Shown here in pieces: positions 3,150 through 36,193 of a stretch of 36,193 nt of DNA. The first letter of the stretch is position 1. Every line of letters starts with the position of its first letter. Where the stretch lies: assembly GCF_001194135.2 (NCBI RefSeq), contig NC_068983.1, forward strand, positions 137,556,822 to 137,593,014, written 5' to 3'. The translations under genes were made by a program, and so were the position numbers. Under the pieces are notes generated by a model. The model saw nothing but the letters and a program-made list of their open reading frames with translations. It made no database searches and was not told the origin of the DNA. The DNA is from Octopus bimaculoides. Taxonomy: Eukaryota.

Positions 3150-3400
3150 GATTGTTACCAGCATCGCCTTCCTGGCACTTGTGCTGGTGGCATGTAAAAA
3201 GTCATTCGAGCGAGATCGTTGCCAGTGCTGCTTGACTGGCTCCTGTGTAGGTGGCATGTAAAATACACCATTTTGAGCGTGGCCGTTGCCAGCACCACCT
3301 GGCTGGCCTTTGTGCCGGTGGCACGTAAAAGCACCCACTACACTCTCGGAGTGGTTGGCGTTAGGAAAGGCATCCAGCTGTAGAAACTATGCCAAATCAG
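3150..3400 (+). mobile_element. RTE-LINE 3' UTR fragment with about three ~63-bp units
   Basis: ccagtgc..gactggctcctgtg..ggtggcatgtaaaa units followed by ctctcggagtggttggcgttagg. Confidence 0.75.
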
Positions 3401-3717
3401 ACTGCGAGTCAGCATATACGACGTGAAATCGCAAGTAACGTGGCAAATTTATAATCGTGTTCGAAGGGTCCTAATCCCTTACATTGCCTTTATAAAGAGC
3501 AATATTGTGCAAAGTGAAGACGATACACTAATATTTCAGATGGAATCTTGATATAAATACAAGTTTTCTGTAGACATAATTAGGAAAGAATTATTGGTAT
3601 GATTCGTTGTTTGTAACATTGAAAAGATATTGCACAAATTTTTTTTTTAGATATCTAGAAAATGTGTGTCAATGTTCTCTGATAATAGGAAATTTTTTTT
3701 TCTAGTGTTATGAAATT

Positions 3718-6700
3718 ATGCGTCCCAAACGATCGTCACTGAGCAGTCTCACCAAAGAAGCTAGGAGGGCAAGAGAAAAACGGAAAAGGGAAACCACAGA
3801 AGAAAGGCAATTAAGATTAGAAAATCACAGGCAAAGACAATTGGCTCGTCAGCAGACAGAAACAGCAGAAGAAAGGCAGGCAAGATTAGAAGCTAAGAAA
3901 CAGAGGACAAGAGCTTATCGTGCAGCTCTCAAGGTAGGTGTCAGGTATACATTCTTAAGCATCACACACCTATAGGAGAAATATAACAAAGGTCAGCTTA
4001 CAGAATTTATTTGCAAGGTCATTGATATTAAAATTTATTTCAGAGAGCAAGGATGTATGTAGAATAAATGTATTAAGAAGCTTTGTGATAAGAAGTTTCT
4101 TGTGATGTCAACTTTTAGTATTGCAGCCTCTCCACAATTTTCGTTAAGAATGAGCTCAACAAAATACTTTGCAACCTTCAGTCATACTTTGCAACCTTCC
4201 TTGAATCTCCATGTCAGGTATAGGAGCTGTGCAATTGATAAACATCGGTGGGCAAGCCAAGTAACTTACCATGCTCTGTACTTCATTATCTGGTATTATC
4301 AGCAACACAGAAATACGCACCTGCAATACAATATCATGTACACTATACATTGTTGAGGGATCACTATCCATATAAATTGAGTATAATTTTGGAATCAATA
4401 TACGTGATCAAAATACAAGTTTAATGAAGCTACTGTTAAATCAATGGTAGATTCAATCAGGAATTACAATTTTGAAAAATTTTCTGAAGAAAATCTACCA
4501 GAGAACGTCTGTGTGAATTGTAGCAGCAGTTACTATACATTTGATGTTGAAGACAAATTATAACAATCTACCATCATGTGAGATTTCAGAATAGGATACG
4601 TATAACATGTAGCTTCATTTTCATTTCAGTTTCGGAATTCTATTGGGATTCTCTGTTCAGATTGATTTTGAATGCTACATATTGCTATATACTTATGTGA
4701 CTGACAGATTCCATTTTGTATCTTTTTATTTCTTTCTTTGATTATGCCTCACTTCCTCAACACTCAGATGAAAATGATGCAGCAAAAAAAGAACGAAATA
4801 CAGCACCTTGGGGAGCAACACTTGAAGAAGCAACACCAGAATCAAATGTTAAAAAATCAACAATCACATGACAGATGGTATGTGGTGACTAAAATGGTAT
4901 TTTGACAATGTTATTGTGTTACTATTTTTCTTACATATTTCTTCTGAATTAATTGCAAATTTTCATTTTAGGCAAATGGACAGTGCTTTATCATCTCCAA
5001 AGACTTCAAAATGTGTACATCTAACTACTAAAATGCCAGTCCAGCAAGATTCAAGTTTAGCACAAGCATCGCAAAATATTACAAAGCCAGCCCAGGTGTT
5101 GGCTTCACCATTTCAAATAACTCCATCCAAATCAAATCTGGTGAAAAATCCAAATCAAACAACCGTATCTAAATCAATAATTAGAAAAAAAGATTTACCG
5201 AAACAAAAATTGCTAGTTACTAGTCATCAACGTAATGTCATGTCTAACCTAGCATCATTGTGGAGAAGTAGAAAATTTTGTGATGCCTGTATTACCAATG
5301 GCTCATCTACTGTAATGGTAAGTATACAGTTGTAAACTTTTTCATATTTATAAACTGTTTCTATTGTCATCATCATGATAACTAAAAAATCTTGCTTGTA
5401 AGTCTAAAAATTTATGCATAATTTCTAATGTGCTTAATATCAAGATATTCTCCCTCTATATTTCTCAAAGGTAGGTGTAGCCTTTAGTTTTAAGTATTAT
5501 TATTATCAGAAAATTCTACGATTCCGTCATTGAAAATAACTTTTTCTGAAACATTTGCTTATTAATATAGAATAGAACATTTTACAGAAAAAGAAAATGG
5601 AGTTGATTTAATTAAGGTATTAATGAAATAACTCTCTGAGATAAGTGGCTTGAGACTTTTGGGAGTGAATAGGTTTTGTAGAAGATGGAGAAAGATACAC
5701 TTACATTTTTCTACTTTATAAACATGTTTCTTAAATGTCTATCATTGTATTGTTGGCAAGCTATAAATATACTGTTATTATTTACTATATTTCAGGTCCA
5801 TAAAATAGTCTTGTCTGCTGTGTCTCCAAAATTATTATTATTAATTAGTACACACATCTCAACTCAGTTTTATGAAGTAAAATTTCCTGAAGTAAGCACA
5901 GAAACTTTAATGGCTTTTGTTGAATACATGTATACTGGACTATTAGATCTTGATCTTAATATTTTACAACAGCTAAAAGTCATTGCAAAACAATTAGACA
6001 TGAAAGACTTACAAAATATATGTGATGTACATCTTTTACGTGGAGCACGTCAGCAACTTTCTTCAACAGTGACTGCGTTTGATGATCCCAGGCAGATGCC
6101 ATCTGATGTTTCAGCTGTTCCGACAGAGGATATTAAACAGGAGATTTCTCAAAATGAATCAGCAGAACTTAAAGAAGATGAGGTTAGCATCTTTGAGCAA
6201 GAGGTTGAGGCTGCATCTTCGGACACTAAGGATAGCAGCTCTTCAGTTAGTTCTCTTATTCTTCCTACTGTAAAAATAGAGCCTGTAGGACCTGATGACG
6301 ACAAATATGGTCAAATGAATAAAAGGGCTTCAACATCTTGTTCAGTTTCAGATAGTTCTCAGGCACTAAACACTCCTTTGAATTCTATAGCTGTGTCCAC
6401 TACAGATTTTAGCTTACCGTTTTCAGATACCACAAACAGCAAAGCAACTGCAAATAAGATACGTGGAACATCACCTAAATTAAAATCTAACGAAGTTGAA
6501 AGTTCTCCAGTTTCTGACTCATCTCCTTTGTCATATCGTGAAGAAAAACTGTGTTCTCAATCTAGACTCATAAGAGAAGACCCTTCTAAACCACTAAATC
6601 GAACAATAACAACTCAGACAATTGACAACAATGAGATTTGTGGTAGCAATGAAGGTGTCTATCCTGTAGGACTTTTTACAGCAGGAGGGGACAGATTACC

Positions 6701-6767
6701 ATTATCATCAACAGAAGTTACCAATGTCAAAATTACAGGTTTATATAAAACAGATGGTCTTACTTGA
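3718..6767 (+). CDS. STPR-like repeat + BTB/POZ protein, copy 1; join(3718..3933,4768..4877,4972..5317,5796..6767), 547 aa
   Basis: Splice sites AAG|gtaggt 3934, ctcag|ATG 4768, TG|gtatgt 4878, tttag|G 4972, ATG|gtaagt 5318, ttcag|GTC 5796. Phases 0/2/0 join in frame (1644 nt). BTB motif H..VM..L..LW...FCDA..VHKIVLSA.SP..EYMYTG.L.L..A.QL.M..L..IC. Two 23-aa repeats at 3790-3927. AATAAA at 6834. The gene model is well supported; the STPR label rests on recalled similarity. Confidence 0.85.
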
Positions 6768-10696: not shown

Positions 10697-11878
10697 TATG
10701 TCAGACAACAGGAGGCACAGATCAATTGGTGGAGGCAGAGGACCAGAAAATGAAGATCTAGAGATTGAACTCTTACAGTGGATTGTTGTTTAGCGTGCAA
10801 ACAATGTAATTGTAAATTATCGCCATTTACGGGAATATGCTTTTGAATTGGTAAAAAGGTTTGGAATTGGAATGAACAGCTTTAGATGTTCTGATAAATG
10901 GATTTTCAATTTCATGAAACAGAATAATCTGACTGTGAGAAAGATTACACATGTTGGTCAAGCAGACAATAAAAACACTTGGAGAAAAGGCACAAATCAC
11001 CAGTGACTATCTAGATAGTATTCCAATGTTAACAACAGATAAGGATGCTAACCATATTTATAATATGGATGAAACACCTGTATATGTTGACATGTTGAGT
11101 TCAACAACCATAGACTTTGTTGGCAATAAAAATGTAGATGCTAGCCCCTGTGGTGCTACCAAAGCTCGTTTTACTACTGTGTTGTTTGTTAATGCTGCAG
11201 GAAAGGTGTTGAAAACGATGATTACCCTTAAAGGATTGAAAAACGTGCCTAAAATCAACGTCGTAAAGAATATTTACTTAACAGTCTCCAACAGAGGATC
11301 AATCACATATGAACTCATGCAGCTGTGGGCTGACAAAGTGTTTGGGCAGAGAACAGCACAACTATCCCATGCTCAAAATTCAGTGCTATTCATGGACGAA
11401 TGCTCAGTGCATGAGAAAACAGAGCTGCTAGAAGTGTTCAAACGTAGGAATACAATTCTCAAACTTATACCTCCTAAAACAACATCTTACTTGCAGCCGT
11501 TAGATGTATCAATTATTGGTCCATTCAAGAAAGCCCTTCGTGCAGAATGGGATAATTAGTTTTTCAAATGACAAAAAGGAGTATACAAATAAAGAATATT
11601 GCAAAAGACCCTAACAAGAGATAGTGAACTTTGTGGCTCAAGCTGTTGCCACTTTAAATAAAGAAACTATAAAGCATGCTTTTGAATGTTGTGGAATTGC
11701 TCCTCGTGGACAGACTGTAGAACATAGCCTCTTAAACTCATGCTTACAGGATGTTTTGTCTGGCCTTGAGGTAAATGCGCCAGATGCACAAAATGATAAA
11801 ATTGAAGATGAGATACAAGTGAAATTAGCACATGTGAATTATGACCAAGTAACAAATGAAGAAATTTGTGATATTTAA
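10697..11878 (+). mobile_element. pogo/Tigger-like DDE transposase pseudogene (CENP-B-type HTH + DDE_1)
   Basis: LEIELLQWI..FRCSDKWIFNFMKQNNLTVRKIT (HTH), a frameshift, then IYNMDETPVY..RFTTVL..VLFMDECSVH..IPPKTTSYLQPLDVSIIGPFKKALR..AFECCGI. Internal stops are present. TIRs not confidently located. Confidence 0.9.
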
Positions 11879-12996: not shown

Positions 12997-13086
12997 AGGT
13001 ATTGTACTAATTTTTTTTGGATATCTAGAAAATGTGTGTGAGTGTTCTCAAATAATAGGACATTTTTTCTCTAGTGTAATGAAGTT

Positions 13087-16000
13087 ATGCGTACCAAACG
13101 ATCATCACTGGGCCGTCTCACCATACATGGAAAGAAGACAAGAGAAAGACGGAAAAGGGAAACCACAGAAGAAAGGCAATTAAGATTACGAAATCATAGG
13201 GAAAGACAATCTGCTGCTCGACAGGCAGAAACAGCAGAAGAAAGGCAGGCAAGATTAGAAACTCAGAAACAGAGGGCAAGAACTCGTCGTGCAGCTCTCA
13301 AGGTAGGTGTCAGGTATACATTCTTAAGCGTCACACACCTATAGGAGAAATATAACAAAGATCAGCTTACAGAATTTATTTGCAAGGTCATTGATATTGA
13401 AATTTATTTCAGAGAGCAAGGATGTATGTAGAATAAATGTATTAAGAAGGTTCATGATATGAAGTTTCTTATGATGTCAACTTTTAGTATTGCAGCCTCT
13501 CCACAAATTTCATTAAAAATGAGCTCAATAAAATCATGAATTAAGGCTCAGTCATACTTTGCAACCTTCCTTGAATCTCCATGTCAGGTTTAGGAGCTGT
13601 GCAATTGATAAACATTAGTTGGCAAGCCAAGTACCTTACCATGCTCCATACTTCATTACCTGGTATTATCAGCAACACAGAAATACGCACCTGTAATAAA
13701 TTGAGTAGAACTTCAGAATCAATGTATGTGATAAAAATACTACTTTAAAGAAGCTACTGTTAAATCAATTGTAAATTCAATCAGGAATTACAACGTTGAA
13801 AAATTTTCTGCAGAAAATCTACCAGAGAACGTCTGTGTGAATTGTGGCAGCAGTCACTATATATTTGATGTTGAAGACAAATTACAACAGTTTACCACCA
13901 TGTCAGATTTCAGAATAGAATAAGTATAACATGCAGCTGCATTCTCATTTCAGTTTTGGAATTCTGTAGAGATTCTCTGTTCAGGTTGATTTTGAATGCT
14001 TTTGGGGATTTACCATATACTCATGTGGCTGACAGATTCCATTTTTTCTTAGTGGATTCAATGTGGGAATTCAAATATTTGTTAGTCTTACAAACAAGAA
14101 TTTTTAGTTATCATTGACATTTGCATTAGCCTAAATTATTCATTCATCACAGTCCAAATTATTTCCATTGAACTGAAATCTTTATTCTTTTATCTTTTTA
14201 TTTCTTTCTTTGATTATGCCCCACTTCCTCAANNNNNNNNNNNNNNNNNNNNNNNNNNNNNNNNNNNNNNNNNNNNNNNNNNNNNNNNNNNNNNNNNNNN
14301 NNNNNNNNNNNNNNNNNNNNNNNNNNNNNNNNNNNNNNNNNNNNNNNNNNNNNNNNNNNNNNNNNNNNNNNNNNNNNNNNNNNNNNNNNNNNNNNNNNNN
14401 NNNNNNNNNNNNNNNNNNNNNNNNNNNNNNNNNNNNNNNNNNNNNNNNNNNNNNNNNNNNNNNNNNNNNNNNNNNNNNNNNNNNNNNNNNNNNNNNNNNN
14501 NNNNNNNNNNNNNNNNNNNNNNNNNNNNNNNNNNNNNNNNNNNNNNNNNNNNNNNNNNNNNNNNNNNNNNNNNNNNNNNNNNNNNNNNNNNNNNNNNNNN
14601 NNNNNNNNNNNNNNNNNNNNNNNNNNNNNNNNNNNNNNNNNNNNNNNNNNNNNNNNNNNNNNNNNNNNNNNNNNNNNNNNNNNNNNNNNNNNNNNNNNNN
14701 NNNNNNNNNNNNNNNNNNNNNNNNNNNNNNNNNNNNNNNNNNNNNATTATGTGATGCCAGTATTAGCAATGGCTCATCTACTGTGATGGTAAGTATACAG
14801 TTGTAAACGTTTTCACATCTATAGACTGTTCCTAATGTCATCATCATAACTAAAAAATCTTGCTTGTAAGTCTAAAAATTTATGCATAATTTCTAATGTG
14901 CTTAATATCAAGATATTCTTTCTTCTACTTCCCTCTATATTTCTCAAAGGTAGGTGTAGCCTTTAGTTTTAAGTATTATTATTATCAGAAAATTCTACGA
15001 TTCCGTCATTGAAAATAACTTTTTCTGAAACATTTGCTTATTAATATAGAAGAGAATATTTTACAGAAAAAGAAAATGGAGTTGATTTAATTAGGGTATT
15101 AATGAAATAACTCTTTGAGATAAGTGAAGTTTAAATCAACTTTCAGTGGCTTAAGACTTTTGGGAGTGAATAGGTTTTGTAGAAGATGGAGAAAGATAAA
15201 CTTACATTTTTCTACTTTATAAACATATTTCTTAAATGTCTATCATTGTATTGTTGGCAAGCTATAAATATACTGTTATTATTTACTATATTTCAGGTCC
15301 ATAAAATAGTCTTGTCTGCTGCATCTCCAAAATTGTTATCACTAATTAGTACACACATCTCTTCTCAGTTTTATGAAGTAAAATTTCCTGAAGTAAGCAC
15401 AGAAGCTTTAATGGCTTTTGTTGAATACATGTATACTGGACTATTAGATCTTGATCTTAATATTTTACAACAGCTAAAAGTCATTGCAAAACAATTAGAC
15501 ATGAAAGACTTACAAAATATATGTGATGTTCATCTTTTACGTGGAGCACGTCAGCAACTTGCTTCAACAGTGACTGTGTTTGATGATCCCAGGCAGATGC
15601 CATCTGATGTTTCAGCTGTTCCGACAGAGGATATTAAACAGGAGATTTCTCAAAATGAATCAGCAGAACTTAAAGAAGATGTGGTTAGCATCTTTGAGCA
15701 AGAGGTTGAGGCTGCATCTTCGGACACTAAGGATAGCAGCTCTTCAGTTAGTTCTCTTATTCTTCCTACTGTAAAAATAGAGCCTGTAGGACCTGATGAC
15801 GACAAATATGGTCAAATGAATAAAAGGGCTTCAACATCTTGTTCAGTTTCAGATAGTTCTCAGGCACTAAACACTCCTTTGAATTCTATAGCTGTGTCCA
15901 CTACAGATTTTAGCTTACCGTTTTCAGATACCACAAACAGCAAAGCAACAGCAAATAAGATACGTGGAACATCACCTAAATTAAAATCTAACGTATTTGA

Positions 16001-16268
16001 AAGTTCTCCAGTTTCTGACTCATCTCCTGTGTCATATCGTGAAGAAAAACTGTGTTCTCAATCTAGACTCATAAGAGAAGACCCTTCTAAACCACAAAAT
16101 CGAACTATAACAACTCAATCAATTGACAACAATGTGACTTATGGTAACACTGAAGGTGTCTATCCTGTAGGACTTTTTACAGCAGCAGGGGACAGATTAC
16201 CATTATCATCAACACAAGTTACCAATGTCAAAAATATAGGTTTATATAAAACAGATGGTCTTACTTGA
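13087..16268 (+). CDS. STPR-like repeat + BTB/POZ protein, copy 2; exon A 13087..13302, exon B and most of exon C in gap 14233-14746, exon C end 14747..14788, exon D 15297..16268
   Basis: Same splice signals as copy 1. All visible exons are open. The 514-N gap matches the 515 nt separating the homologous flanks in copy 1, so the missing exons probably lie in the gap. Confidence 0.75.
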
Positions 16269-16624
16269 TATCAGAAATAGTTAATTTTCAGTTTACACAC
16301 ACACTGATAAATTGAGCTTTAATTTTGTAATAAATAATTTTTGAAATACTAGCCTTGTTTTATTTTCTAATGAAAAATACAGTAGAGTTTTCTGTCTTGT
16401 GAGAAATTGTTGATAAATGTTTATTTCAATACTGTCTTCATAAACCTGTTTTCTGTTCACTACTGCTGCTAGATGTACCCTGTTGCTGTCCATGGCTGAT
16501 ACCAGTGTCACATAACCAGCCCATTTAAAAGTACCCTTGAATTGTCGGGCGATACGCTGTGCTTGAGAAGACCTAGTGAATGAAGTAAAATGAAAATGAA
16601 AATCAAAATAGAAATTGTAGTTGT

Positions 16625-17017
16625 GGCTGATGCCAGTGCTGCCTGACTGGCACCTGTGCTGGTGGTACATAATAAGCACCATTCAAGTGTGAGTCAATGC
16701 CAATTCCACATGCTCCTTGTGCCGGTGGCTCATAAAAACACCATCCGAATGTGGTTGATGCCAGTGCTTCCCGATTGGCTCCTGTGCCGGTGACACATAA
16801 AAAGTACCATTTGAACATGGTCGATGCTAGTGTTGCCTGACTGGTTACTGTGCTGGTGGCACATTAAAAGCAACTTACAATCTTGGACTGGTTAGTGTTA
16901 GGAAGGGCATTCAGATCAGATTGGAGCCTGGTGCAGCTTACTGGCTTGCCAGTCCTCAGTCAAACTGTCCAACCCATGCCAGCATAGAAAATGGATATTA
17001 ATCAATGATGATGATGA
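16625..17017 (+). mobile_element. RTE-LINE 3' UTR fragment with about four ~63-bp units and a (TGA)n tail
   Basis: Same unit and terminus as 19420-19905. Confidence 0.75.
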
Positions 17018-17519
17018 CTTAGTATCCATACAAAAATTTCTTTAAAATCCTCTATTACCAAGGGATTAAGAAATTGCATAGAGCAATATGCATATTACAA
17101 TCCACTTTTGGTTGCTATTTCGAATTATAAATTATGGGTGCATTAACTGTAACACAGGATTGAATCTCATCTCATTGATCTCTCTCTCTGTCTCTCTTTG
17201 TCCATGAAGATGATGTAGAGACATGTTATTTACATCTGTCTATAGCAGTGTTAGTTAAAAATCTATAGATATGCTTTGTAGTTCAGAATAGCAATTAATG
17301 TTTTGTGTGATATATACCTGTGTTACTAAATGTTCGCCCTTAGGTTAAATCAGTATGTGTGTCTTAAGTTATTGACGATTCTTAGAAATTTGAAATTTTG
17401 TGTAGGAGTTTGCCTTTTGGCTCTGGTTCAACAGACCTATTGATCAAAAGCATTCCATTCCTTCCTAATATCTTCTTTTTTAGGCATAATATACATCCTG
17501 GATACTTCGGTAAATGGGA

Positions 17520-17779: not shown

Positions 17780-18012
17780 GACTGGCTCCCGTGCTGGTAG
17801 CATGTAAAAAGCACCATTTGAGCGTTGTTGATGCCAGTACTGCACGATTGGTCCTACTACACTCTCGGAGTGGTTGGCGTTAGGAAGGGCATCCAGCTGT
17901 AGAAATCTTGCCAGATCAGACTGGAGCCTGGTGCAGCCTTCTGGCTTACCAGTCCCCAGTCAAACTGTCCAACCCATGCCAGCATGGAAAGCAAACGATA
18001 AACGATGATGAT
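17780..18012 (+). mobile_element. RTE-LINE 3' end fragment
   Basis: ctctcggagtggttggcgttaggaagggcatccagctgtagaaa...ccaacccatgccagcatggaaag...gatgatgat. Confidence 0.75.
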
Positions 18013-18479
18013 AATTTTGATTAAACCAAAACAGGAATGGTTGCGTTTAGTCCAAACACTTATTTTCAAATATACTTAGAACTACATTATACAGAGTTAT
18101 ATTCCTTTTAACATGGTAGCATTTCTAATAGGTCGAATAACCATGAAGAGGTTTTTCATTGATTAGCGCATGATTTTACTTTCAGTTAATATTACTTTTG
18201 TTAAAGTAGCCAGCATCTTCCAATAAGATGCAAACATCTTTATATTTAAAAGAAGAAAATATTCCATAATGAAACTAAATCGATGCCATGTGAGCTGTAC
18301 AATGCCATGTGTTTAATGTAAGTATAGAAGAGCAGCTGGAATCGAATTATTGGAAACACTGGATTGAAAGCAATGTTCACCGGAAAGATCACTATTTATT
18401 TGTGTGGGATACCATGTGACAACCCACGTGCTCAACGATTTCCAACGAAACCATCAAAATATCGAACGCATGTGCTTTG

Positions 18480-18959: not shown

Positions 18960-19905
18960 GTTGTGATTGAAGTAGAGGACATGTGTAGGCTTGAAAGAAA
19001 TGAAGCTCGTATGATCTGCTGGATGGGTAATGTAGGTGTAAACGCTCTGAAAGAAAAGTTGGGCATAAGAAGCATCAGATGTGGTGTGCAAGAGAGGCGA
19101 CTGTGCTGTTATGGCCATGTGTTATGTATGAATGAAGACAGCTGTGTGAGGAAGTGCCATTCCCTAACTGTAGAAGGAACTTATGGAAGAGATAGAGCCA
19201 AGAAAACATAGGATGAGGTGGTGAAGCATGACCTTTGAACATTGGGCCTCACAGTGGTGATGACAGGAGACTGGGACCTTTGGAAATATGCTGTGATTGA
19301 GAAGACCCAGCAACTAAAGTGAGATTGAAGCCATGCATGTCCGGCCCTGTTAAGAATACCCCTGATGCATCAAGCGATATGATAGGCTTGAGAAGACCTG
19401 CTGAGTCAAGTAAAGCCAATATCATAGCTGGGACCAGTGCTCTCTGACTGGCTCCCATGTCAGTGGCACGTAAATAGCACCATCCGAACTTGGTCGATGT
19501 CAAGTCTGTCTGACTGGCTCCCATGCCGGTGGCATGTAGAAAGCACCAACTGAACATGGCCAATGCCAGTACCCCCAGACTGGCTCCTGTACTGGTGGCA
19601 GGTAAAAAGCATTGACTGATCGTGGCCAATGCCAGTAGCCCTGATTGGGTCTTATGCCGGTAGCATGTAAAAACACCATCCAAATGTAATTGATGCCAGG
19701 CCCGCGTGACTGGCTTCTGTGCTGGTGGTACATAAAAAGTACCCACTACACTCTTAGAGTGGTTGGTGTTAGGAAGGGCATCCAGCTGTAGAAACATTGC
19801 CAGACCAGATTGGAGTCTAGTGCAGCCACTGGCTCTGCAGACCTCAATCAAATCGTCCAACCCATGCCAGCATAGAAAATGGATGTTAAATGATGATGAT
19901 GATAT
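18960..19905 (+). mobile_element. 5'-truncated RTE-clade LINE: ORF C-terminus, 3' UTR with about five ~65-bp tandem units, (TGA)n tail
   Basis: RLERNEARMICWM..LGIRSIRCGVQERRLCCYGHVLCMNEDSCVRKC..VEGTYGRDRAKKT*DEVVKHDL resembles the RTE RLRWYGHV..GRPRKTW tail. Units at ~19434, 19501, 19567, 19633 and 19696. Confidence 0.85.
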
Positions 19906-20827
19906 TTTTTATTTGATATAAGTTTAAATAAAAATGTGTGTATCAATATAAATTTATATTAAATTGTTTATTCTAATATAAAAAAAAAGATTGTCATTTA
20001 ATGCCTGTTTTCCATGCTTGAATGGGTCGGACAGCTTGACAAGAACTGCCAAGCCCGGCAGATGCACCAAGTGCCATAATCTGTTTTGGCTTGGTTTCTA
20101 TGGTTGGATGTCCTTCCTTACACTAACTCTTCTACACTTAGAATTTACAAGATTATAAGATATATTATGAAGGCTTAATGGTTCTAATATTAATGTGCTA
20201 GGTCTCTGACTACATAATTGTGGGTTGAAACTGAAGTACTACAGAGTGCCTGACATAAATAAAACATTTTTGCTCTTATGTTATGAATATTAGTAAGAAG
20301 AGCATTTATCAGTAAAAACAATTGCACTAATAAAAAAAAAATCTTGGCTATACAAAATGGCAATAACAAAGAAAACAAAATAAAAATTAAATTAAATAAT
20401 CAAGTCTTGTTTCTAGTTTTCTATTTACGAAATTGAATATTTCATTTTCTAAATTTTCCCATAAAAAAAAACAGAAAATTAATAAAAGAAATTCCACAAA
20501 CAATTTGGTCATTGTGTCGATGTACCTAGCATTATCTTCAATGATCTGTATGCTAGTTAGCCTCTCCATTGATTAACAATAAAAGGATGGATATACTTGG
20601 AAACCTTAATCTTAATCATTGATGTCTTTATATATATTTTTAACTCCTTAATTTATCAATCCCTTCCAAACATAGAAAATGATGTACTGCATTGTATCCT
20701 TGAGCAAGATACTTTATTTCCTGTTGCTTCAAAATGGTGAAAATAAGTATTGCCTGTATTTAAAAGGGCCAGTCTTGTTGCATTCTATGTCATGTTGAAT
20801 CTCCCTGAGAACTATGTTAAGGATACT

Positions 20828-21850: not shown

Positions 21851-23678
21851 GCGTTTCTTAGCGGCGATATCATTATCATTGAGGTTTATCCGAGGCTAGT
21901 TGAATAAGCTAATCCATCAATAAGGAAGAGAGTTATCGAACCTGGAGACTCTGGAAACGAATATTTCAGCTATTGTTAGCCCTTCTCTGGTAAGATTAGT
22001 TTGTTTCCACCACTTTGCTAATATGAAATACTCGAAAATCGTTTAATGTGGTTCTTCTATTTTCACATCTTAAATATTATAATTCTTTTGTTTCCTTCTG
22101 GTTACCCATATTGTTTTTTTTGCAATGAATGATTAATCATGCCTGCCGTGCTTTAGTGAATAATATCTTACCAAGTAACCATCTTCTATTTATATATGAT
22201 ATCTGAATTAAATATAATGCATAGAAAATTCAGAAAAACTCAGCATTACGCAAAATATGTTTTAAAAGGCATTAGGAAAGAACAACTCTGTAATCGAATT
22301 GTTTCTTATAACAAACTTTTTGGGAAGTAAATACGAAGTTTTAGGGAAGTTATGAAATATCGTAAAAATACCCAATTGTCTTTGTGCGAAAAAAAAAAAA
22401 TTGACATTTCTACATTTGATATAAGACTACAAATTTGGAATCGAACTCATTACTAATGACTTTTGTTTTCTGTAGCAGAGATAGATATCTGGCCAGGTAT
22501 TGGTGGTGATGGTTTGCACGAATACCCGGCCTTTTCACTCATTCTTCGAAATCTCGCCAAAAACGTTCGATGCTTTTGGTGTGTATGTGTGGTGGTAAAA
22601 TTATTTAGTACTGATATCGAGTCTGGTGTGAAACTATAAATTTACCATCATATTTTATTTAGTTTCTCATGTTGAATCCAGCAAAGAAGCTTTATCATAT
22701 ATAATTTAGGAGTTCAGATTTTGAATCCAATGCAATTCAGCGAATGCAAAATGAAATCGCTAGTAAAATGGCGAATTCATAATAGTCTTTCAAGGGGAGC
22801 TAATCCAATAATATTTGTTGATACCACAATTATCCAAAGAAATAAAAGAACTTGCAAAATCCTGATCGAATTTCACTCCTCCCCATTGTCCTAGAAGTGT
22901 CAAAGATTATCTGGTAATTTAAAAGAAAAAAGATAGCGATTTCTTTAACCATAACTCATTCCATTAGTGAATGAGAGCAGTGCTAAATATGTCATTGTAA
23001 AGGGCTCGCAAGCACTATTTTGAAAAAACCATTATCTCTCTTCATTTTTCTACTCCGTATACCTTGTAACTTATTGGTGAAAGGGCGTATTGTGATTGTG
23101 AGGTCAGGCATTTATAGTTACCTTTGGTGCTTTGGTTGTTTTGTTTATGGCTGAAGATTTGTGTTACAGTTAAATTTCCTTGATATACATGTCTTCGTGA
23201 TTTTGAAAGATAACTCGAGTGTCAAGTACCTATTAAAAGATGCTTACAACATTTATGTTCATAGAAACATGTCTGTCATGAAGTGTTATTAGCCCCTGCT
23301 CACATTGAGCAGACGTAAGTTCAAATATATTCCAGTCTTAGCCAAACCATTTTTCTTTGTAGACATACTGTATCTAAGGACAATTCTTCAAAGTGTTCTT
23401 TTATGATTTTTGAAATACTTTTGACCACAAGGTTATTCAACGAGGGATCACCTGAGGTTTTTATATTGTCAAATAACAATAGGTATGGTGATCTGCATCT
23501 AGAAATTTCTGTTAATCATATCGTCACCACTTTTCCAAAGATTTCATTATGAAATTACACTTAATTTTGATGGTTTCTTTTACTTGCATATAAATATTTA
23601 CTTAAATAAAAATAATTTTAAATCCATTAACATTAAATAATATTTTACTGAACGTTACAGATTCAACCGTTCTTAAAA

Positions 23679-26600
23679 ATGGAAGAGAGAATAAGTCAAC
23701 AAAGAGCGGCAGCAAGAGAGAGACAGAGAAGACGACGACAGCGGTTATCATCCGAAGAGAGGCAAGCAGTCCGTGAACGTATTCGAGAACGTATGCAAAA
23801 AATGAGGAGTAATATGAACGAAGAGGAGAGAGAACTTTATCTTCAGAATAGGAGAAACAGGGATCGAGAAAGAAGAAGTAATATGGATCAAGATGAGAGA
23901 GAACTTTATCTTCAGAATAAAAGAAACAAAGATCAGGAGAGAAGAAATAACATGAATCCTGAGGAGAGAGAAACTTATCTACAGAATATGAGAAATAGAG
24001 TTCAAAAGCGAAGAAATGCCATAAATGAAGATCAACAAAATGAAGTTATGCATCCCAAACTATCGTCACTGGGCCGTCTCACCAAACATGCTAGGAAGGT
24101 AAGAGAAAGACAGAAAAGGGAAACCACGGAAGAAAAACAATTAAGATTACAAAACCAGAGGCAAAGACAATTTGCTAGTCAGCAGGCAGAAACAGCGGAA
24201 CAAAGGCAGGCAAGATTGGAAGCTCAGAAACAGAGGACAAATACTTATCGTACAAGTCTCAAGGTAAATATCAGGTATACATTTTTAAGCATCACACACC
24301 TATAGAGGAAATATAACAAAGATCTGCTTATAGAATTTATTTGTGAGGTCATTGATATTGCAATTAATTTCAGAGACCAAGGATATATGTAGGATGAATG
24401 TATTAAGAAGCTTCATAACATGAGGTTTCTTGTGATGCAAACTTTTAGTACTGCAGCCTCTCCAAAATTTTCATTAAAAATGAGCTCAATAAAATTATGA
24501 ATTAAAGCTCAGTCATACTTTGTATGCTTCCTTGAATCTCCATGTCAGGGTTAGTAGCTGTGCAATTGATAAACATCAGTGGGCAAGCCAAGTAACTTAG
24601 TGTGCTCAGTACTTCATTATCTGGTATTATCGGCAACACAGAAATACGCACATGTAATAAAGTATCATGTATGCTATACAGTGTTGAGGGATCACTATCA
24701 ATTATAAATTGAGTAGAACTTTGGAATCAATGTATGTGATAAAAATCCAAATTTAATGAAGCTGCTGTCATGTCAATTGTAAATTCAATCAGGAATTACA
24801 ATGTTGAAAAATTTTCTGAAGAGAATCTACAAGAGAAAGTCTGTGTGAATTGTGGCAGCAGTTACTATATATTTGATGTTGAAGACAAATTACAACAGTC
24901 TACCATCATGTCAGATTTCAAAATAGGATAAGTATAACATCCAGCTCCATTCTCGTTTCAGTTTTGGAATTCTGTAGAGATTCTCTGTTGAGGTTGATTT
25001 TGAATGCTTTTTCTTTAGTGAAAGTTTCAGTGTGGAAATTAAGCATTATGTGTTAGCCTTACAAACAAGAATTTTTAGTTATCATTGACATTTTCATTAA
25101 AATAACTTATCAATTCGTCACAGTCTAAATTATTTCCATTGAACTGAAATCTTTATTTGTATCTTTTTATTTCTTTCTTTGATCATGCCTCACTTCCTCA
25201 ACACTCAGATGAAAATGACACAGAAAAAAAAGAATGAAACACAGCACCTTGGGGAGCAACACCTGCAGAATCAAAAGTTTAAAAATCAACAATCACATGA
25301 CAGATGGTATGTGATGACTAAAATGGTATTTTGACAATGTTATTGAGTTACTATTCTTCTTATATATTTCTTCTGAATTAATTGCAAATTGTCATTTTAG
25401 GCAAATGGACAGTGCTTTATCATTTCCAAAGACTTCAAAATGTGTACATCTAACTACTAAAATGCCAGTCCAGCAAGATTCAAGTTTAGCCCAAGCATCG
25501 CAAAATATTACAAAGCCAGCTCAGGTGTTGACTTCACCATTTCAAATAACTCCATCCAAATCAAAGCTGATGAAAAATCCAAATCAAACAACTGTATCTA
25601 AATCAATAATTAGAGAAAAAGATTTACCGAAACAAAAATTGCTAGTTACTAGCCATCAACATTATGTTATGTCTAACCTAGCATCCATGTGGAGAAATAG
25701 GAAATTATGTGATGCCAGTATTAGCAATGGCTCATCTACTGTGATGGTAAGTATACAGTTGTAAACGTTTTCACATCTATAGACTGTTCCTAATGTCATC
25801 ATCATGATAACTACAAAATCTTGCTTGTAAGTCTAAAAAATTATGCTTAATTTCTAATGTGCTTAATATCAAGCTATTCTTTCTTCTACACCCCTCTATA
25901 TTTCTTAAAGATAGGTCTAGTTGACGTGTATGTTCTTACTGGTGCAATTCTTAGATAAATCTGTTGTTTTATAATTAATTGGTCATAAAATCTTTTATNN
26001 NNNNNNNNNNNNNNNNNNNNNNNNNNNNNNNNNNNNNNNNNNNNNNNNNNNNNNNNNNNNNNNNNNNNNNNNNNNNNNNNNNNNNNNNNNNNNNNNNNNN
26101 NNNNNNNNNNNNNNNNNNNNNNNNNNNNNNNNNNNNNNNNNNNNNNNNNNNNNNNNNNNNNNNNNNNNNTATAGATAAATTTTTTATTAAGTTTTAAGTT
26201 TTATTATTATCAGAAAATTTTATGATTCAGTCATTGAAATACACTAGAATATTTTACAGAAAAAGATAATGGAGTTTATTTAATTAAAGTATTAATGAAA
26301 TAACTCTCTGAGATAAATGAAGTTTAAACTAACTTTCAGTGGCTTAAGACTTGGTTAGTCAATAGCTTTTGTAAAAGTTGGAAAAACATAAACTTACATT
26401 TTTCTACTTTATGAACATGTTTCTTAAATATCTATCATTGTATTGTTGGCAAGCTATAAACGTACTGTTTATTATTTACTATATTTCAGGTCCATAAAAT
26501 AGTCTTGTCTGCTGTGTCTCCAAAACTGTTCTCAGTGTTTAGTACACACATCTCTTCTCAGGTGTTTGAAGTAAAATTTCCTGAAGTAGTTAGTACAGAA

Positions 26601-27464
26601 GCTTTAATGGTTTTTGCTGAATACATGTATACTGGACTATTAGATCTTGATCTTAATATTTTACAACAGCTAAAAGTCATTGCAAAACAATTAGACACGA
26701 AAGACTTAGAAAATCTGTGTGATGCTCATCTTCTAAGTGGAGCAAGTCAGCAACTTGCTTCGACAGTTACTGCATTTGATGATCCCAGGCAGATGCCATC
26801 TGATGTTTCAGCTGTTCCTACAGAGGATATTAAACAAGAGATTTCTCAAAACGAATTAGCACAACTTAAAGAAGGTACAGTTAGAACCTTTAAGCGAGAG
26901 TTTGATGCTGCATCTCTGGACTCTAAGAGTGGCAACTCTCCAGTTGGTTCTGTTATTCTTCCCAGTGTAAAAATGGAGCCTGTAGGACCTGATGATGACA
27001 AATATGGTCAAATGAATGAAAGAGCTTACACATCTTGTTCAGTTTCAAATAGTTCTGAGACTCTAAAAACTACTTTGAATTCTATAGTTGTGTCCACTAC
27101 AGATTTTAGCTTACCGTTTTCAGATACCACAAACAGCAAAGCAACAGCAAACAAGATACATGGAACATCACCTAAATTAAAATCTAATGTATTTGAACGT
27201 TCTCCAGTTTCTGACTCATCTCCTGTGTCATATCGTGAAGAAAAACTGTGTTCTCAATCTAGACTCATAAGAGAAGACCCTTCTAAACCACTAAATCGAA
27301 CAATAACAACTCAGACAATTGACAACAATGAGATTTGTGGTAGCAATGAAGATGTCTATCCTGTAGGACTTTTTACAGCAGGAGGGGACAGATTATCATT
27401 ATCATCAACACAAGTTACCAATGTCAAAAATACAGGTTTATATAAAACAGATGGTCTTACTTGA
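23679..27464 (+). CDS. STPR-like repeat + BTB/POZ protein, copy 3 with an expanded repeat exon; join(23679..24263,25209..25306,25401..25746,26490..27464), 667 aa
   Basis: Phases 0/2/0 join in frame (2004 nt). Donors gtaaat, gtatgt, gtaagt. Four extra 23-aa repeats at 23745-24020 plus the two shared repeats from 24120. BTB motif intact. Confidence 0.85.
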
Positions 27465-30008: not shown

Positions 30009-31025
30009 AGTATCCATACAAAAATTTTTATTGCCAAGGGAGTAAGAAATTGGATAGAGCAATATGCATATTACATTACATTTTTGGTTGCTAATTTGAT
30101 TTATAAATTACTGGTGCATTAACTGTAACACAGGATTGAATCTAATCTCATTGATCTCTCTTTCTCTTTGTCCATGAAGATGATGCATGTAGAGACAAGT
30201 TATTTACATCTGTCTATAGCAGTGTTAGTTAAATATCTGTAGATATGATTTGTAGTTCAGAACAGTAATTAATGTTTAGTAGCACATGCCTTGGAAAATA
30301 TTTTTTTTTTGTGTGAGATATGATACCTGTGTTACTAAATATTCGCTCTCGGGTAAGACCAGTATGTGTGTCCATTTAAGGTATTCATGATGATTCTTAG
30401 AAATTTGAAATATCATTGCATTGGAGTTTGCCTTTTAGCTCCAGGTCGGCTCTGGTTCAACAGACCTATTGAACAAAAGCATTCTATTCCTTCCTAATAT
30501 CTTCTTTTTTAGGGATAATATACATCCTGGATGCTCTGGTAAATGGGAGGGTCACTGCTTTTGTAGCTGAATGGAACAAAAGTATCCTGAAGTATTGGGA
30601 TCTTCCAGCATGTGGTGTTTGAGGCATTTTGAGGTACTGGCCACTAATGGAGAAGTTCTTGTGATCATTGGCAGCTTAGTGTCAAGTGATGCCTGTGAGG
30701 GTGCTTGGCTTTTCCAACACCTTAGCCTTATCATCACCCATGGTAATGCCGTGAGTGTTTGCCTGCTTTAGTAGGTCCTGTTGAACCTTGTGGTGTGCGA
30801 TCAATTGATGCACTTGGTGTTGCATTGTATTATTTGTCTTTCTCCCTCTTTTATCCTTTTTGTTTGTTTTTCTTTTGTAAAATATATTCCTGTATTGCCT
30901 GACTGGCTCTTGTGCTGGCGGCACATAAAAAGTATCATTCAAGCATGGTCAATGCCAGTACTGACTGATTGGCCCTTGTGCTGGTGGCATGTAAAAAGCA
31001 CCCACTACACTCTCGGAGTGGTTCC
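30009..31025. repeat. Intergenic segment paralogous to ~17021-17860, including the CRE relic and RTE 3' units
   Basis: agtatccatacaaaaattt..gcaatatgcatattaca..ctctggttcaacagacctattga is shared by both segments. Confidence 0.8.
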
Positions 31026-34498: not shown

Positions 34499-36193
34499 AT
34501 GCCTCCCAAAATATCATCACTGGGCCGTCTCACCAGGAATGCTATGAGGGTAAAGGAAATACGGAAAAACGAAACCACAGAAGAAAGGCAATTAAGATTA
34601 GAAAATCATAGGGAAAAACAGTTTGCTAGACGGCGGACAGAAACAGCAGAACAAAGGCAGGCAAGATTAGAAGCTCGGAAACAGAGCACATATAATTATC
34701 GTACAAATCGCAAGGTAGATATCAGGTATACATTCTTAACCATCACACACCTATAGGAGAAATATAACAAAGTTGTGATATCAACTTTTAGTATTGCAGC
34801 CTCTCCACAATTTTCATTAAAAATGAGCTCAACAAAATTATGAATTAAAGCTCAGTCATACTTTGTATGCTTCCTTGAATCTCCATGTCAGGGTTTGTAG
34901 CTGTGCAATTGATAAACATCAGTGGGCAAGCCAAGTAACTTAGTGTGCTCAGTACTTCATTATCTGGTATTATCTGCAACACAGAAATACGCACATGTAA
35001 TAAAGTATCATGTATGCTATACAGTGTTGAGGGATCACTATCAATTATAAATTGAGTAGAACTTTGGAATCAATGTATGTGATAAAAATCCAAATTTAAT
35101 GAAGCTGCTGTCATGTCAATTGTAAATTCAATCAGGAATTACAATGTTGAAAAATTTTCTGAAGAGAATCTACCAGAGAAAGTCTGTGTGAATTGTGGCA
35201 GCAGNNNNNNNNNNNNNNNNNNNNNNNNNNNNNNNNNNNNNNNNNNNNNNNNNNNNNNNNNNNNNNNNNNNNNNNNNNNNNNNNNNNNNNNNNNNNNNNN
35301 NNNNNNNNNNNNNNNNNNNNNNNNNNNNNNNNNNNNNNNNNNNNNNNNNNNNNNNNNNNNNNNNNNNNNNNNNNNNNNNNNNNNNNNNNNNNNNNNNNNN
35401 NNNNNNNNNNNNNNNNNNNNNNNNNNNNNNNNNNATGTTGAAGACAAATTACAACAGTCTACCATCATGTCAGATTTCAGAATAGGATAAGTATAACATC
35501 CAGCTCCATTCTCGTTTCAGTTTTGGAATTCTGTAGAGATTCTCTGTTCAGGATGATTTTGAATGCTATATATTGCTATATACTTATGTGACTGACAGAC
35601 TCCATTTTTTCTTAGTGGATTCAATGTGGGAATTCAAATATTTGTTAGTCTTACAAACAAGAATTTTTAGTTATCATTGACATTTGCATTAGCCTAAATT
35701 ATTCATTCATCACAGTCCAAATTATTTTCATTGAATTGAAATCTTTATTCTTTTATCTTTTTATTTCTTTCTTTGATCATGCCTCACTTCCTCAACACTC
35801 AGATGAAAATGATACAGAAAAAAAAGAACGAAATACAGCAACACTTAAAGAAGCAACACCAGAATCAAATGTTAAAAAATCAACAATCACATGACAGATG
35901 GTATGTGGTGACTAAAATGGTATTTTGACAATACTATTGAGTTACTATTCTTCTCTTCTGTATATTTCTTCTGAATTAATTGCAAATTTTCATTTTAGGC
36001 AAATGGACAGTGCTTTATCATCTCCAAAGACTTCAAAATGTGTACATCTAACTACTAAAATGCCAGTCCAGCAAGATTCAAGTTTAGCACAAGCATCGCA
36101 AAATATTACAAAGCCAGCTCAGGTGTTGGCATCACCATTTCAAATAACTCCATCCAAATCAAATCTGGTGAAAAATCCAAATCAAACAACCGT
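34499..36193 (+). CDS. STPR-like repeat + BTB/POZ protein, copy 4, 3'-partial; exons 34499..34714, 35803..35900, 35999..>36193
   Basis: Acceptor tctag at 34486. AAG|gtagat, ctcag|ATG, TG|gtatgt, tttag|G. All exons open and homologous to copies 1-3. The BTB part lies beyond the window. Confidence 0.8.

Follow-up and report, generated by a model that had tools for sequence, protein, structure and literature searches.

Why does one exon of a tandemly repeated octopus gene differ between copies almost only by amino-acid-changing substitutions, while its neighbours appear nearly identical? The exon in question (exon A, 72 codons) lies in a window of 36,193 nt from Octopus bimaculoides (the whole stretch of DNA that was analyzed; contig NC_068983.1, positions 137,556,822 to 137,593,014 of the forward strand). 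The initial annotation attributed the contrast to diversifying selection on putative recognition residues, as seen for the contact residues of zinc fingers. When its counts were repeated, copies 1 and 2 of exon A were found to differ at 30 of 216 nt, with 21 codons changing amino acid and 2 differing only synonymously, and 3 differing positions were found in the first 147 nt of the adjacent intron (intron A), all as originally given. The number of residues that differ in exon D (21, from 29 nt differences) was likewise reproduced, as were the conserved framework ETxE(E/Q)(R/K)QxRL and the four 13-residue strings quoted for positions 11-23. The near-identity of the neighbours was a local feature: divergence as high as that of the exon itself was found in the 5' flank (12-24 %) and across much of intron A (8-16 %).

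The counts were compared to a chance model of 30 random substitutions on exon A (kappa 2.7), which gave means of 19.8 amino-acid-changing and 6.3 synonymous-only codons. The 21 changing codons match this neutral expectation (P=0.39), and only the shortage of synonymous-only codons was unusual (P=0.035). By Nei-Gojobori counting, Sd was 4.5 over 49.5 sites and Nd was 25.5 over 166.5 sites; for exon A of this pair alone, the omega of 1.77 was not significant (Fisher p=0.24).

The gene array and the module encoded by exon A

Four 'Ken-like' BTB genes lie in tandem in the window and a fifth (copy 0) lies upstream; exon A has five copies only in the genome. The proteins named as relatives are from O. 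bimaculoides, O. sinensis and O. vulgaris, and the array is syntenic in three Octopus species. According to the annotated proteins, including the protein of the window itself (P0001, copy 1), the exon order is A-B-C-D. The features are as follows (the slash marks the exon edge).

3718-3933, + strand: exon A of copy 1, ATG to AAG/GT, in P0001
4768-4877, + strand: exon B of copy 1, 110 nt, acceptor cag/, donor TG/gtatgt, in agreement with P0001
4972-5317, + strand: exon C of copy 1, coding for the linker and the beginning of the BTB domain, in agreement with P0001
5796-6767, + strand: exon D of copy 1, coding for the remainder of the BTB domain and a Ser/Thr-rich tail, ending with the stop codon (open reading frame, PF00651)
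13070-13086, + strand: splice acceptor (tctag), 12 nt 5' of the ATG of copy 2 exon A
13087-13302, + strand: exon A of copy 2, open reading frame of 72 codons, ATG to AAG/GT
14233-14745: assembly gap in copy 2 (run of N), masking exon B and most of exon C
15297-16268, + strand: exon D of copy 2, homogenized with copy 1
23652-24263, + strand: copy 3 exon A extended at its 5' end by coding sequence that carries another array of 23-residue repeats (open reading frame)
24048-24263, + strand: exon A of copy 3, ATG to AAG/GT
34499-34714, + strand: exon A of copy 4, ATG to AAG/GT, Pfam STPRs 21.8 bits (E=2.6e-4)

The BTB domain is divided between exons C and D. PF00651 was detected above the Pfam cut-off in P0001, P0002, P0007 and P0024 (40.8-52.7 bits) and at 46.9 bits in the exon D frame of copy 2 (15183-16268); exon C of copy 2 picks up again past the gap at 14746-14788. 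The extension of copy 3 includes a 69-nt tandem repeat (3.2 copies, 23810-24031) and is annotated as coding in XP_014782229 (P0007). The tctag acceptor is kept in copies 0, 1, 2 and 4 and in O. sinensis and, since it lies upstream of the ATG, exon A can also be used as an internal exon. In copy 0, this acceptor joins exon A in frame to THAP-coding exons (P0002). Thirteen sequences, representing at least four taxa, retain the open reading frame and framework of exon A; in O. sinensis and O. vulgaris, exon A of copy 0 is decayed. Neighbouring members of the family were observed to bear THAP, pogo-type HTH or FLYWCH heads. A direct splice from exon A to exon C (by a second donor 11 nt downstream, with the frame open) was also considered and dropped, as the annotated proteins contain a real exon B.

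Exon A encodes a short putative STPR-type DNA-binding module of three basic helices, as judged from its sequence. In copy 2, a degenerate repeat forms a basic lead (residues 2-24) ahead of STPR repeat 1 (residues 25-47) and repeat 2 (residues 48-70), and the window copies likewise have two canonical repeats, one degenerate lead repeat and three predicted helices. The repeat period is exactly 23 residues (E25 to E48) in all copies. Residues E25, R33, L34, E48, T49, R56 and L57 were unvarying in nine sequences, with T or S at position 26, and R38 and Q41 (repeat 1 positions 14 and 17) were invariant. Members of the STPR family typically have three to seven repeats, a number that is not strictly defining; copy 4 of O. 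sinensis and O. vulgaris has gained two extra repeats via a 165-nt internal duplication. For copy 2 exon A, AlphaFold2 predicted three helices (residues 7-23, 27-46 and 50-71; mean pLDDT 84.8), interrupted at the E-T pairs.

Isolated exon A peptides matched Pfam STPRs at 29.6 bits (O. sinensis copy 4), 21.8 bits (O. bimaculoides copy 4) and 17.8 bits (O. bimaculoides copy 2, E=0.0045) compared to a gathering cut-off of 27 bits. No match was found for the peptides of O. bimaculoides copies 1 and 3, and STPRs was never reported in Pfam scans of the full-length proteins. Among the relatives found with an exon A profile, 56 of 66 were strong Pfam STPRs members, some with Helitron_like_N. The best PDB match of this profile was FMBP-1 (5d23), in register and weak (E=0.04); a single-sequence PDB search with exon A gave no STPR match, and Foldseek comparison of the AlphaFold2 model to the PDB gave no matches. 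A Pfam STPRs search of the O. bimaculoides genome yielded at least 59 matching places.

Exon A shares with the STPR modules (PF21107) of Bombyx FMBP-1 and of ZNF821- and MBR-1-type proteins the 23-residue period, the conserved Glu1, Thr/Ser2, Arg6, Arg9 and Leu10, the single predicted helix per repeat after a two-residue linker, and the basic composition. Glu1, Thr/Ser2 and Arg9 are conserved in each STPR repeat (PMC4856987). By contrast to FMBP-1-type modules, in which four repeats are usual, exon A has two canonical repeats and the degenerate lead; H/Q/K, R, R, Q and Q/R stand in place of the hydrophobic, base-contacting M13, S14, Y16, A17 and L21 of FMBP-1; most copies score under the Pfam cut-off; and a BTB domain is fused C-terminally to the module. 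Similarity also extends to the N-terminal STPR arrays of animal Helitron (HLE1) Rep/Hel proteins, in which the lead MPPK(K)RS.LS likewise stands ahead of ET.E.R..RL repeats. For copy 4, exon A aligned from Met1 with a Helitron-type STPR protein (42 % identity, E=5e-12), and relatives found with the profile bear Helitron_like_N, DUF6570 or Pif1 domains. STPRs has been reported as a stable component domain of HLE1 elements (PMC11417382). Unlike HLE1, the octopus gene is an intron-containing host gene without a Rep or helicase part and with BTB exons downstream. In the literature searched, no description of an STPR-BTB architecture in cephalopods was found.

Gene conversion ends within exon A

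Gene conversion was examined by sliding-window divergence and quartet-informative sites, with the O. bimaculoides copies (Ob1, Ob2) compared to those of O. sinensis (Os1, Os2). A run of 36 consecutive orthology-type sites was found to end at window position 3856 in copy 1 (13225 in copy 2). From 13294 to the gene end, grouping is by species at about 80 informative sites and by orthology at a single one. The switch of site type thus falls at 13225-13294, inside exon A, and divides copy 2 as follows.

13087-13225, + strand: part of exon A that, with the 5' flank, escapes conversion and retains older paralogue-specific divergence
13235-13302, + strand: 3' third of exon A, a mosaic at the tract edge (sites CCC, OOO, then C from 13294)
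13303-13449, + strand: start of intron A, with recent conversion between copies 1 and 2 (first 147 nt, 3 differences)

From window position 3908 to the gene end, divergence was 0-4 % for Ob1-Ob2 and 3-7 % for Os1-Os2, compared to 7-15 % for orthologues. Over the first 147 nt of intron A, paralogues differed by 2-4 % and orthologues by 12-15 %, and purifying constraint was on this ground rejected as an explanation of the near-identity there. In exon D, paralogues differed by 0-3 % and orthologues by 7-11 %, with 39 consecutive concerted-type sites. Species-specific motifs follow the same grouping: ETAEERQ and AALK are common to Ob1 and Ob2, ETVEQRQ and (A/T)TLK are common to Os1 and Os2, and the derived donor context gtaggtgtcagg is present in Ob1 and Ob2 only. 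In quartets that included copy 3, exon A was entirely orthology-type and exon D was a mosaic. Thus, the neighbours of exon A are nearly identical because of gene conversion. The initial annotation had allowed that conversion alone might account for the flanks, and that the contrast would then not speak for selection; conversion after speciation was found to explain the flank similarity fully.

Partial concerted evolution with one segment that escapes conversion is known from clustered protocadherins, UGT1 variable exons and a ruminant CEACAM1 paralogue (PMC3924837, PMC3966226, PMC1885805, PMC7042247). The octopus array resembles these systems in that most of the unit is more similar between paralogues than between orthologues, tract boundaries are sharp, and the escaping segment is a putative determinant of specificity with elevated dN/dS. 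It differs in that each octopus unit owns its 'constant' exons instead of drawing on a common set, the escaping part is a putative N-terminal DNA-binding repeat, and the evidence for selection is weaker.

Rates of change and fast codons in exon A

Among the coding parts of the gene, exon A evolves fastest: its overall omega is about 1.05-1.2, compared to 0.43 in exon C and 0.50 in exon D (range for exons B to D, 0.3-0.8). The whole-exon M0 estimates (1.05-1.34) were, under F3x4, indistinguishable from 1 (p=0.2-0.6). The sole whole-segment run to reach significance was F61 on full exon A of 10 sequences (omega 1.63, p=0.040), and pairwise Fisher tests for exon A dN/dS above 1 gave p>=0.11. Paralogue pairs gave an exon A omega of 0.75-2.2. 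For orthologue pairs, the value was low in copy 1 (0.38) and copy 3 (0.27, p=0.016), about 0.96 in copy 4 and 1.3-1.7 in copy 2. Since O. bimaculoides and O. sinensis split, purifying selection has acted on copies 1 and 3. The values near 1 for copies 2 and 4 after the split are compatible with relaxed constraint too. By branch model, the branches that predate the species split had an omega of 2.5 (p=0.036 against 1), and copies 1 and 3 had 0.45 later.

Codon site models were fitted with our own likelihood code, which was checked solely by null simulation and by exons C and D as negative controls. With 11 sequences of exon A, M2a was favoured over M1a (LRT 14.5, p=7e-4) and M8 over M8a (p=7e-5). 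The M7 versus M8 comparison proposed in the initial annotation likewise favoured a fast codon class (statistic 14.4), and the omega of this class was about 3-6 by all three comparisons. None of 77 parametric bootstrap replicates of exon A reached the observed statistic. Addition of a twelfth octopod sequence raised the M1a/M2a LRT to 26.6 (p=1.6e-6). When the conversion-free segment (nt 1-141) was analyzed by itself, the LRT was 13.3 with 12 sequences (p=0.0013) and 7.8 with 11 (bootstrap p about 0.045, 3/67). No fast class was detected in the control exons (LRT 0.5 for exon C and 4.1 for exon D). The copy 2 lineage supplied much of the signal (p=0.066 without copy 2). A neutral third class at a 4.7-fold rate fitted equally well (lnL -1000.72 compared to -1000.62 for M2a) and, once rate variation was allowed, omega above 1 was not significant for full exon A (p=0.13) or for nt 1-141 (p=0.066). 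CpG hypermutability was rejected as the source of the hot codons, as CpG transitions make up a minority of the changes at codons 2, 5 and 44. Positive selection on exon A is suggested, not proven. In favour of the diversifying selection originally proposed is the fast codon class, which is also favoured in the conversion-free segment; the quoted pair (p=0.24), the rate-variation model and the purifying selection on copies 1 and 3 do not bear it out, and it is best regarded as plausible but unproven.

The fast codons are 14, 16, 42, 44, 50, 59, 66 and 70, which correspond to repeat positions 13, 15, 18, 20, 3, 12, 19 and 23, respectively. In FMBP-1, the STPR positions that contact DNA are 6, 9, 10, 13, 14, 16, 17, 20 and 21, and AT-rich DNA is recognized chiefly by shape with few base contacts (PMC4856987). 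When mapped on this structure, only codons 14 (repeat position 13) and 44 (repeat position 20) fell on contacts, 2 of 8 where about 3 are expected by chance. Since FMBP-1 STPR reads DNA mainly by shape, the proposed analogy to zinc fingers is not supported either. KRAB zinc-finger clusters and the Drosophila BTB factors lola and mod(mdg4) resemble the octopus array as tandem or modular transcription factors in which an unvarying protein-interaction domain is joined to a DNA-binding part that varies. The octopus genes differ from these in that the fast sites do not follow known contact positions, and no shared-exon or trans-splicing architecture was seen in the array.

Explanations of the pattern and their meaning

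Partial concerted evolution, in which the putative DNA-binding exon A escapes conversion and evolves fast at or above the neutral rate, is in our view the likely explanation. Exon A is the first coding exon of tandemly duplicated O. bimaculoides BTB transcription-factor genes. Conversion between neighbours has homogenized the unit from the final third of exon A across introns and BTB domain to the tail, and this happened separately in O. bimaculoides and in O. sinensis/vulgaris. Outside the tract lie the 5' flank and the first ~140 nt of exon A, where divergence is older than the species split. In the escaped segment, an invariant framework of E1, T2, R6, R9 and L10 alternates with a few hypervariable codons (14, 16, 42 and 44, plus 59 and 70). 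Amino-acid change was fastest on the branches that separate paralogues and in the copy 2 lineage, with copies 1 and 3 now conserved. From these patterns, the paralogues may have gained different DNA (or partner) specificities, and selection against homogenizing them could help to hold the conversion boundary in place.

A somewhat unlikely alternative is that there was no positive selection: apart from a few framework residues, a weakly constrained, basic, helix-prone segment would be drifting neutrally, with copies 2 and 4 relaxed or decaying and the contrast reduced to a conversion boundary. The mean omega of about 1, the non-significant pairwise tests, the orthologue omega of copies 2 and 4 (~1.0-1.7) and the neutral hot-site model that fits as well as M2a are all consistent with drift, as are the conservative nature of many replacements (K/R, E/Q, A/T/V), a 5' flank divergence between copies 1 and 2 (24 %) that exceeds dN (17 %), and the decay of copy 0 exon A. 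However, M1a was rejected even with its neutral class, beyond all 77 bootstraps and more strongly with the twelfth sequence. Drift would also require scattered 4-5-fold hot codons that are mostly not CpG transitions, and the intact frame and framework in 13 sequences and the clear constraint on copies 1 and 3 argue against it. That diversifying selection acts specifically on STPR DNA-recognition residues in zinc-finger style, giving each paralogue its own motif, we regard as unlikely: the shortfall of fast codons on the nine contact positions, the invariance of R38 and Q41, shape readout of AT-rich DNA with few base contacts in FMBP-1 (PMC4856987), the loss of omega above 1 under rate variation and the present purifying selection on copies 1 and 3 weigh more with us than the significant site-model tests, the invariance of the framework while positions 11-23 vary, and the placement of codons 14 and 44 at FMBP-1 contacts (PMC4856987).

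An assembly or annotation artefact (collapsed or mis-joined repeats, or an exon A that is not truly coding) is highly improbable. Eight assembly gaps lie in the window, one within copy 2, and some NCBI models are chimeric or span several units, but the same array, orthology groups and concerted pattern recur in independent chromosome-level assemblies of O. sinensis and O. vulgaris, and in every copy exon A keeps an open frame and good splice sites, and the annotated proteins include it. It is also conceivable, if quite improbable, that exon A is a Helitron-derived STPR head domesticated onto a BTB repressor scaffold, with hypervariable codons that record an arms race with Helitrons or other AT-rich repeat targets of the octopus genome; conversion would then preserve the effector half and selection keep the targeting half diverse, in a non-zinc-finger analogue of KRAB-ZNF/transposon co-evolution.

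Taken as partial concerted evolution, the locus is a clean, species-replicated case in which conversion keeps half of a transcription-factor gene uniform and leaves a putative DNA-binding head distinct. It also documents an STPR-BTB architecture, with a head that resembles the N-terminus of Helitron transposases. If the fast codons are not selected, the array would present an ordinary conversion boundary beside a weakly constrained basic segment. If they are selected and alter specificity, it would be a compact system for the study of STPR helix-DNA recognition and would bear on how regulators diversified in cephalopods, which have expanded transcription-factor families.

Organization of the array

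The window (~33% G+C, eukaryotic, with 8 assembly gaps) carries a direct repeat of ~10-kb period. The spliced translation of copy 1 was found to match the window's own protein, P0001, and named relatives in Octopus bimaculoides, O. sinensis and O. vulgaris labeled 'transcription factor Ken-like' or 'BTB domain-containing protein'; copy 3 corresponds to P0007 (XP_014782229, LOC106877738). The annotated proteins have the exon order A-B-C-D, with the BTB domain (PF00651) split over exons C and D.

Features of the array (window coordinates)
3718-3933, exon A of copy 1 (exon A: 72 codons, ATG to AAG|GT)
4768-4877, exon B of copy 1 (110 nt)
4972-5317, exon C of copy 1
5796-6767, exon D of copy 1
10939-11559 (+), transposase-like open frame between copies 1 and 2
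13087-13302, exon A of copy 2
14233-14745, assembly gap in copy 2
23652-24047 (+), 5' coding extension of copy 3 exon A
23810-24031, 69-nt tandem repeat within this extension
24048-24263, exon A of copy 3
34499-34714, exon A of copy 4
2045-2362, 3163-3410, 16624-17018, 17853-18018, 19440-19906 and 30894-31023, interspersed repeat family

Only five copies of exon A were detected in the whole genome, four in the window and one ~10 kb upstream (copy 0, G000:C3:137546805-137547008; locus L005), where exon A is joined behind THAP-coding exons with an open frame and a 12-nt deletion. In the copy 0 orthologues of O. sinensis and O. vulgaris (loci L007 and L010), only the last ~75 nt align to exon A, and stop codons lie in frame upstream of this remnant; a sixth unit, wholly without exon A, is present in the same two species.

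In copy 2, the assembly gap hides all of exon B and the greater part of exon C, and the UniProt model of this copy (P0012) is visibly broken. A splice acceptor 12 nt 5' of the exon A ATG (13070-13086, with equivalents in copies 1 and 4) and an out-of-frame ATG at -8 (ATGAAGTTATG) are kept across copies and species; thus, a 5' exon and a short, overlapping upstream ORF probably lie ahead of exon A. The O. sinensis NCBI models P0010, P0033 and P0006 (loci L012 and L007) cover 25-46 kb and several units, and isoform P0010, which starts in unit 2 exon A and continues within unit 4 exon A, results either from splicing between units or from faulty annotation.

A 206-residue open frame in the interval separating copies 1 and 2 matches DDE_1 (pogo/Tigger-type transposase, E=1.5e-16); it may represent an inserted transposon or a further domesticated fragment. 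Heads of pogo-type HTH, FLYWCH or THAP type occur in related members of the family (LOC106877732 isoforms). The repeats interspersed between the gene units, which share 70-90% identity and partly form short tandem arrays, probably represent a SINE or some other element of transposon origin.

A gene-conversion boundary within exon A

The initial annotation had described exon A of copies 1 and 2 as diverging almost only by amino acid replacement beside near-identical neighbours. Its counts were all reproduced: exon A has 30 differing nucleotides, with the amino acid replaced in 21 codons and only synonymous change in 2, and there are 3 differences in the first 147 intron bases and 21 different residues in exon D. 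These exon A counts are less extreme than their appearance suggests. Synonymous sites make up only 49.5 of the 216 nt, and Nei-Gojobori analysis gave an omega of 1.77 (Sd=4.5, Nd=25.5; Fisher p=0.24). Since 30 random substitutions on exon A yielded a mean of 19.8 replacement codons, the 21 observed are unremarkable; the shortage of synonymous-only codons is the only nominally unusual count (P=0.035). Near-identity of the neighbours is likewise only local, with divergence between copies 1 and 2 of 12-24% in the 5' flank and 8-16% over much of intron A.

For comparison with the O. bimaculoides units, the O. sinensis and O. vulgaris orthologous arrays were retrieved and merged (Ob and Os denote O. 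bimaculoides and O. sinensis copies). Exon A sequences sorted into orthology groups 1 to 4. As expected of orthologues, Ob1 and Os1 differed by 5-7% in sliding windows across exon A and its 5' flank, compared to 14-18% for Ob1 and Ob2. From position 3908 of the window onward this relationship was inverted (Ob1-Ob2, 0-4%; Os1-Os2, 3-7%; orthologues, 7-15%). Within the quartet Ob1, Ob2, Os1 and Os2, 36 consecutive informative sites of orthology type end at 3856/13225 (copy 1/copy 2) and are followed by a short mosaic; from 3925/13294 to the gene end, ~80 sites are of species type and 1 is of orthology type. The derived donor context gtaggtgtcagg is common to Ob1 and Ob2, as are the residues ETAEERQ and AALK; Os1 and Os2 have ETVEQRQ and (A/T)TLK in common. 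Constraint does not explain the identity of copies 1 and 2 at the intron start, as this region is not conserved between species. Taken together, these comparisons reveal that gene conversion has driven concerted evolution of the unit separately in each lineage. The conversion tract has its 5' boundary within exon A, and the contrast between this exon and its neighbours is the edge of that tract.

Copy 3 displays a patchier version of the same pattern, with an exon A entirely of orthology type and a mosaic exon D. The exon D 3' ends of copy 1 (6526-6700) and copy 3 (27220-27400) differ by 1-3%, compared to 8-18% further upstream in this exon, which marks a distinct tract of recent conversion with copy 3.

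STPR homology of exon A

The conserved repeat framework and four variable strings quoted in the initial annotation were confirmed. E25 to E48 span exactly 23 residues, and E1, T/S2, R6, R9 and L10 are invariant in every repeat. Pfam STPRs scored 17.8-21.8 bits for Ob2 and Ob4 and 29.6 bits, above cut-off, for O. sinensis copy 4. The best PDB match of the exon A profile was the FMBP-1 STPR (5d23), in register (E=0.04), and three helices with breaks at the E-T pairs were predicted by AlphaFold2. Among 1.84 billion representatives the profile matched 138 proteins; 56 of the 66 longer ones are strong STPRs members, and Helitron_like_N, DUF6570, Pif1 or Mutator domains are present in several. Copy 4 aligned with one such relative from the first methionine at 42% identity. 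STPRs have been reported as a stably included domain of HLE1 Helitrons (PMC11417382).

An internal 165-nt duplication in copy 4 of O. sinensis and O. vulgaris (loci L012 and L008; 93322-93702 of the merged O. sinensis array) adds two repeats to exon A, extending it to 127 residues; O. bimaculoides is without this duplication. The copy 3 extension, annotated as coding and kept in O. sinensis and O. vulgaris, includes 3.2 copies of a 23-residue repeat (NMNxEERELYLQNxRNR...), which form another, divergent array of STPR periodicity. In O. bimaculoides, the genome-wide count of matches above the STPRs profile cut-off is at least 59, several with in-frame stops. At two of these loci, given open frames of 1081 and 603 aa by the genome scan, all six frames are open through much of the sequence, an effect put down to N stretches.

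Codon evolution of exon A

Pairwise paralogue omega ranged from 0.75 to 2.2 for exon A (0.75-1.5 for conversion-free nt 1-141), none significant. Orthologue comparisons of exon A gave omega values of 0.38 (copy 1), 0.27 (copy 3, p=0.016), 1.3-1.7 (copy 2) and ~0.96 (copy 4). Omega in the other coding exons (B, C and D) was 0.3-0.8.

Codon models were fitted with our own GY94 codon-likelihood program. For 11 exon A sequences, M0 omega (1.19-1.22) did not differ from 1, and M2a was favored over M1a (LRT 14.5, p=7e-4) with an omega of 3.2 for 39% of sites. The M7/M8 comparison proposed in the initial annotation gave an LRT of 14.4, and M8a/M8 a p of 7e-5. None of 77 parametric bootstrap replicates under M1a reached 14.5 (highest, 11.1); for nt 1-141 of these 11 sequences the bootstrap p was ~0.045. 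With the same six genes throughout, the LRT was 13.4 for exon A, 0.5 for exon C and 4.1 for exon D. Addition of an octopod exon A from read set L017 raised the LRT to 26.6 (p=1.6e-6; nt 1-141, 13.3, p=0.0013). Without the copy-2 lineage, the LRT was lowered to 5.4 (p=0.066). Codons 14, 16, 42, 44, 59 and 70 had posteriors above 0.9, with 50 and 66 joining them in some runs.

These site-model tests favor a fast codon class, as expected under the diversifying selection claimed initially, but a neutral third class with a 4.7-fold rate, the most important caveat, matches the M2a fit (lnL -1000.72 vs -1000.62). With rate and omega both free, omega was 2.0 and did not differ from 1 (p=0.13; nt 1-141, 0.066); exon A is so short that selection and rate heterogeneity are inseparable. 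Diversifying selection on exon A is thus reasonable but unproven. Its assignment to recognition residues was unsupported: in FMBP-1-DNA structures, DNA is touched by positions 6, 9, 10, 13, 14, 16, 17, 20 and 21 and recognized chiefly by shape (PMC4856987), and just 2 of the 8 fast codons coincide with a contact position, with positions 14 and 17 of repeat 1 invariant.

In a four-category branch model, omega was 2.5 on between-paralogue branches (p=0.036 against 1) and, since the species split, 0.45 for copies 1 and 3, 1.76 for copy 2 and 0.92 for copy 4. Exon A is an STPR-type, Helitron-like putative DNA-binding head that escapes homogenisation, with a handful of codons changing at or above the neutral rate; its evolution was fastest at paralogue separation and in copy 2, and copies 1 and 3 are at present under constraint.
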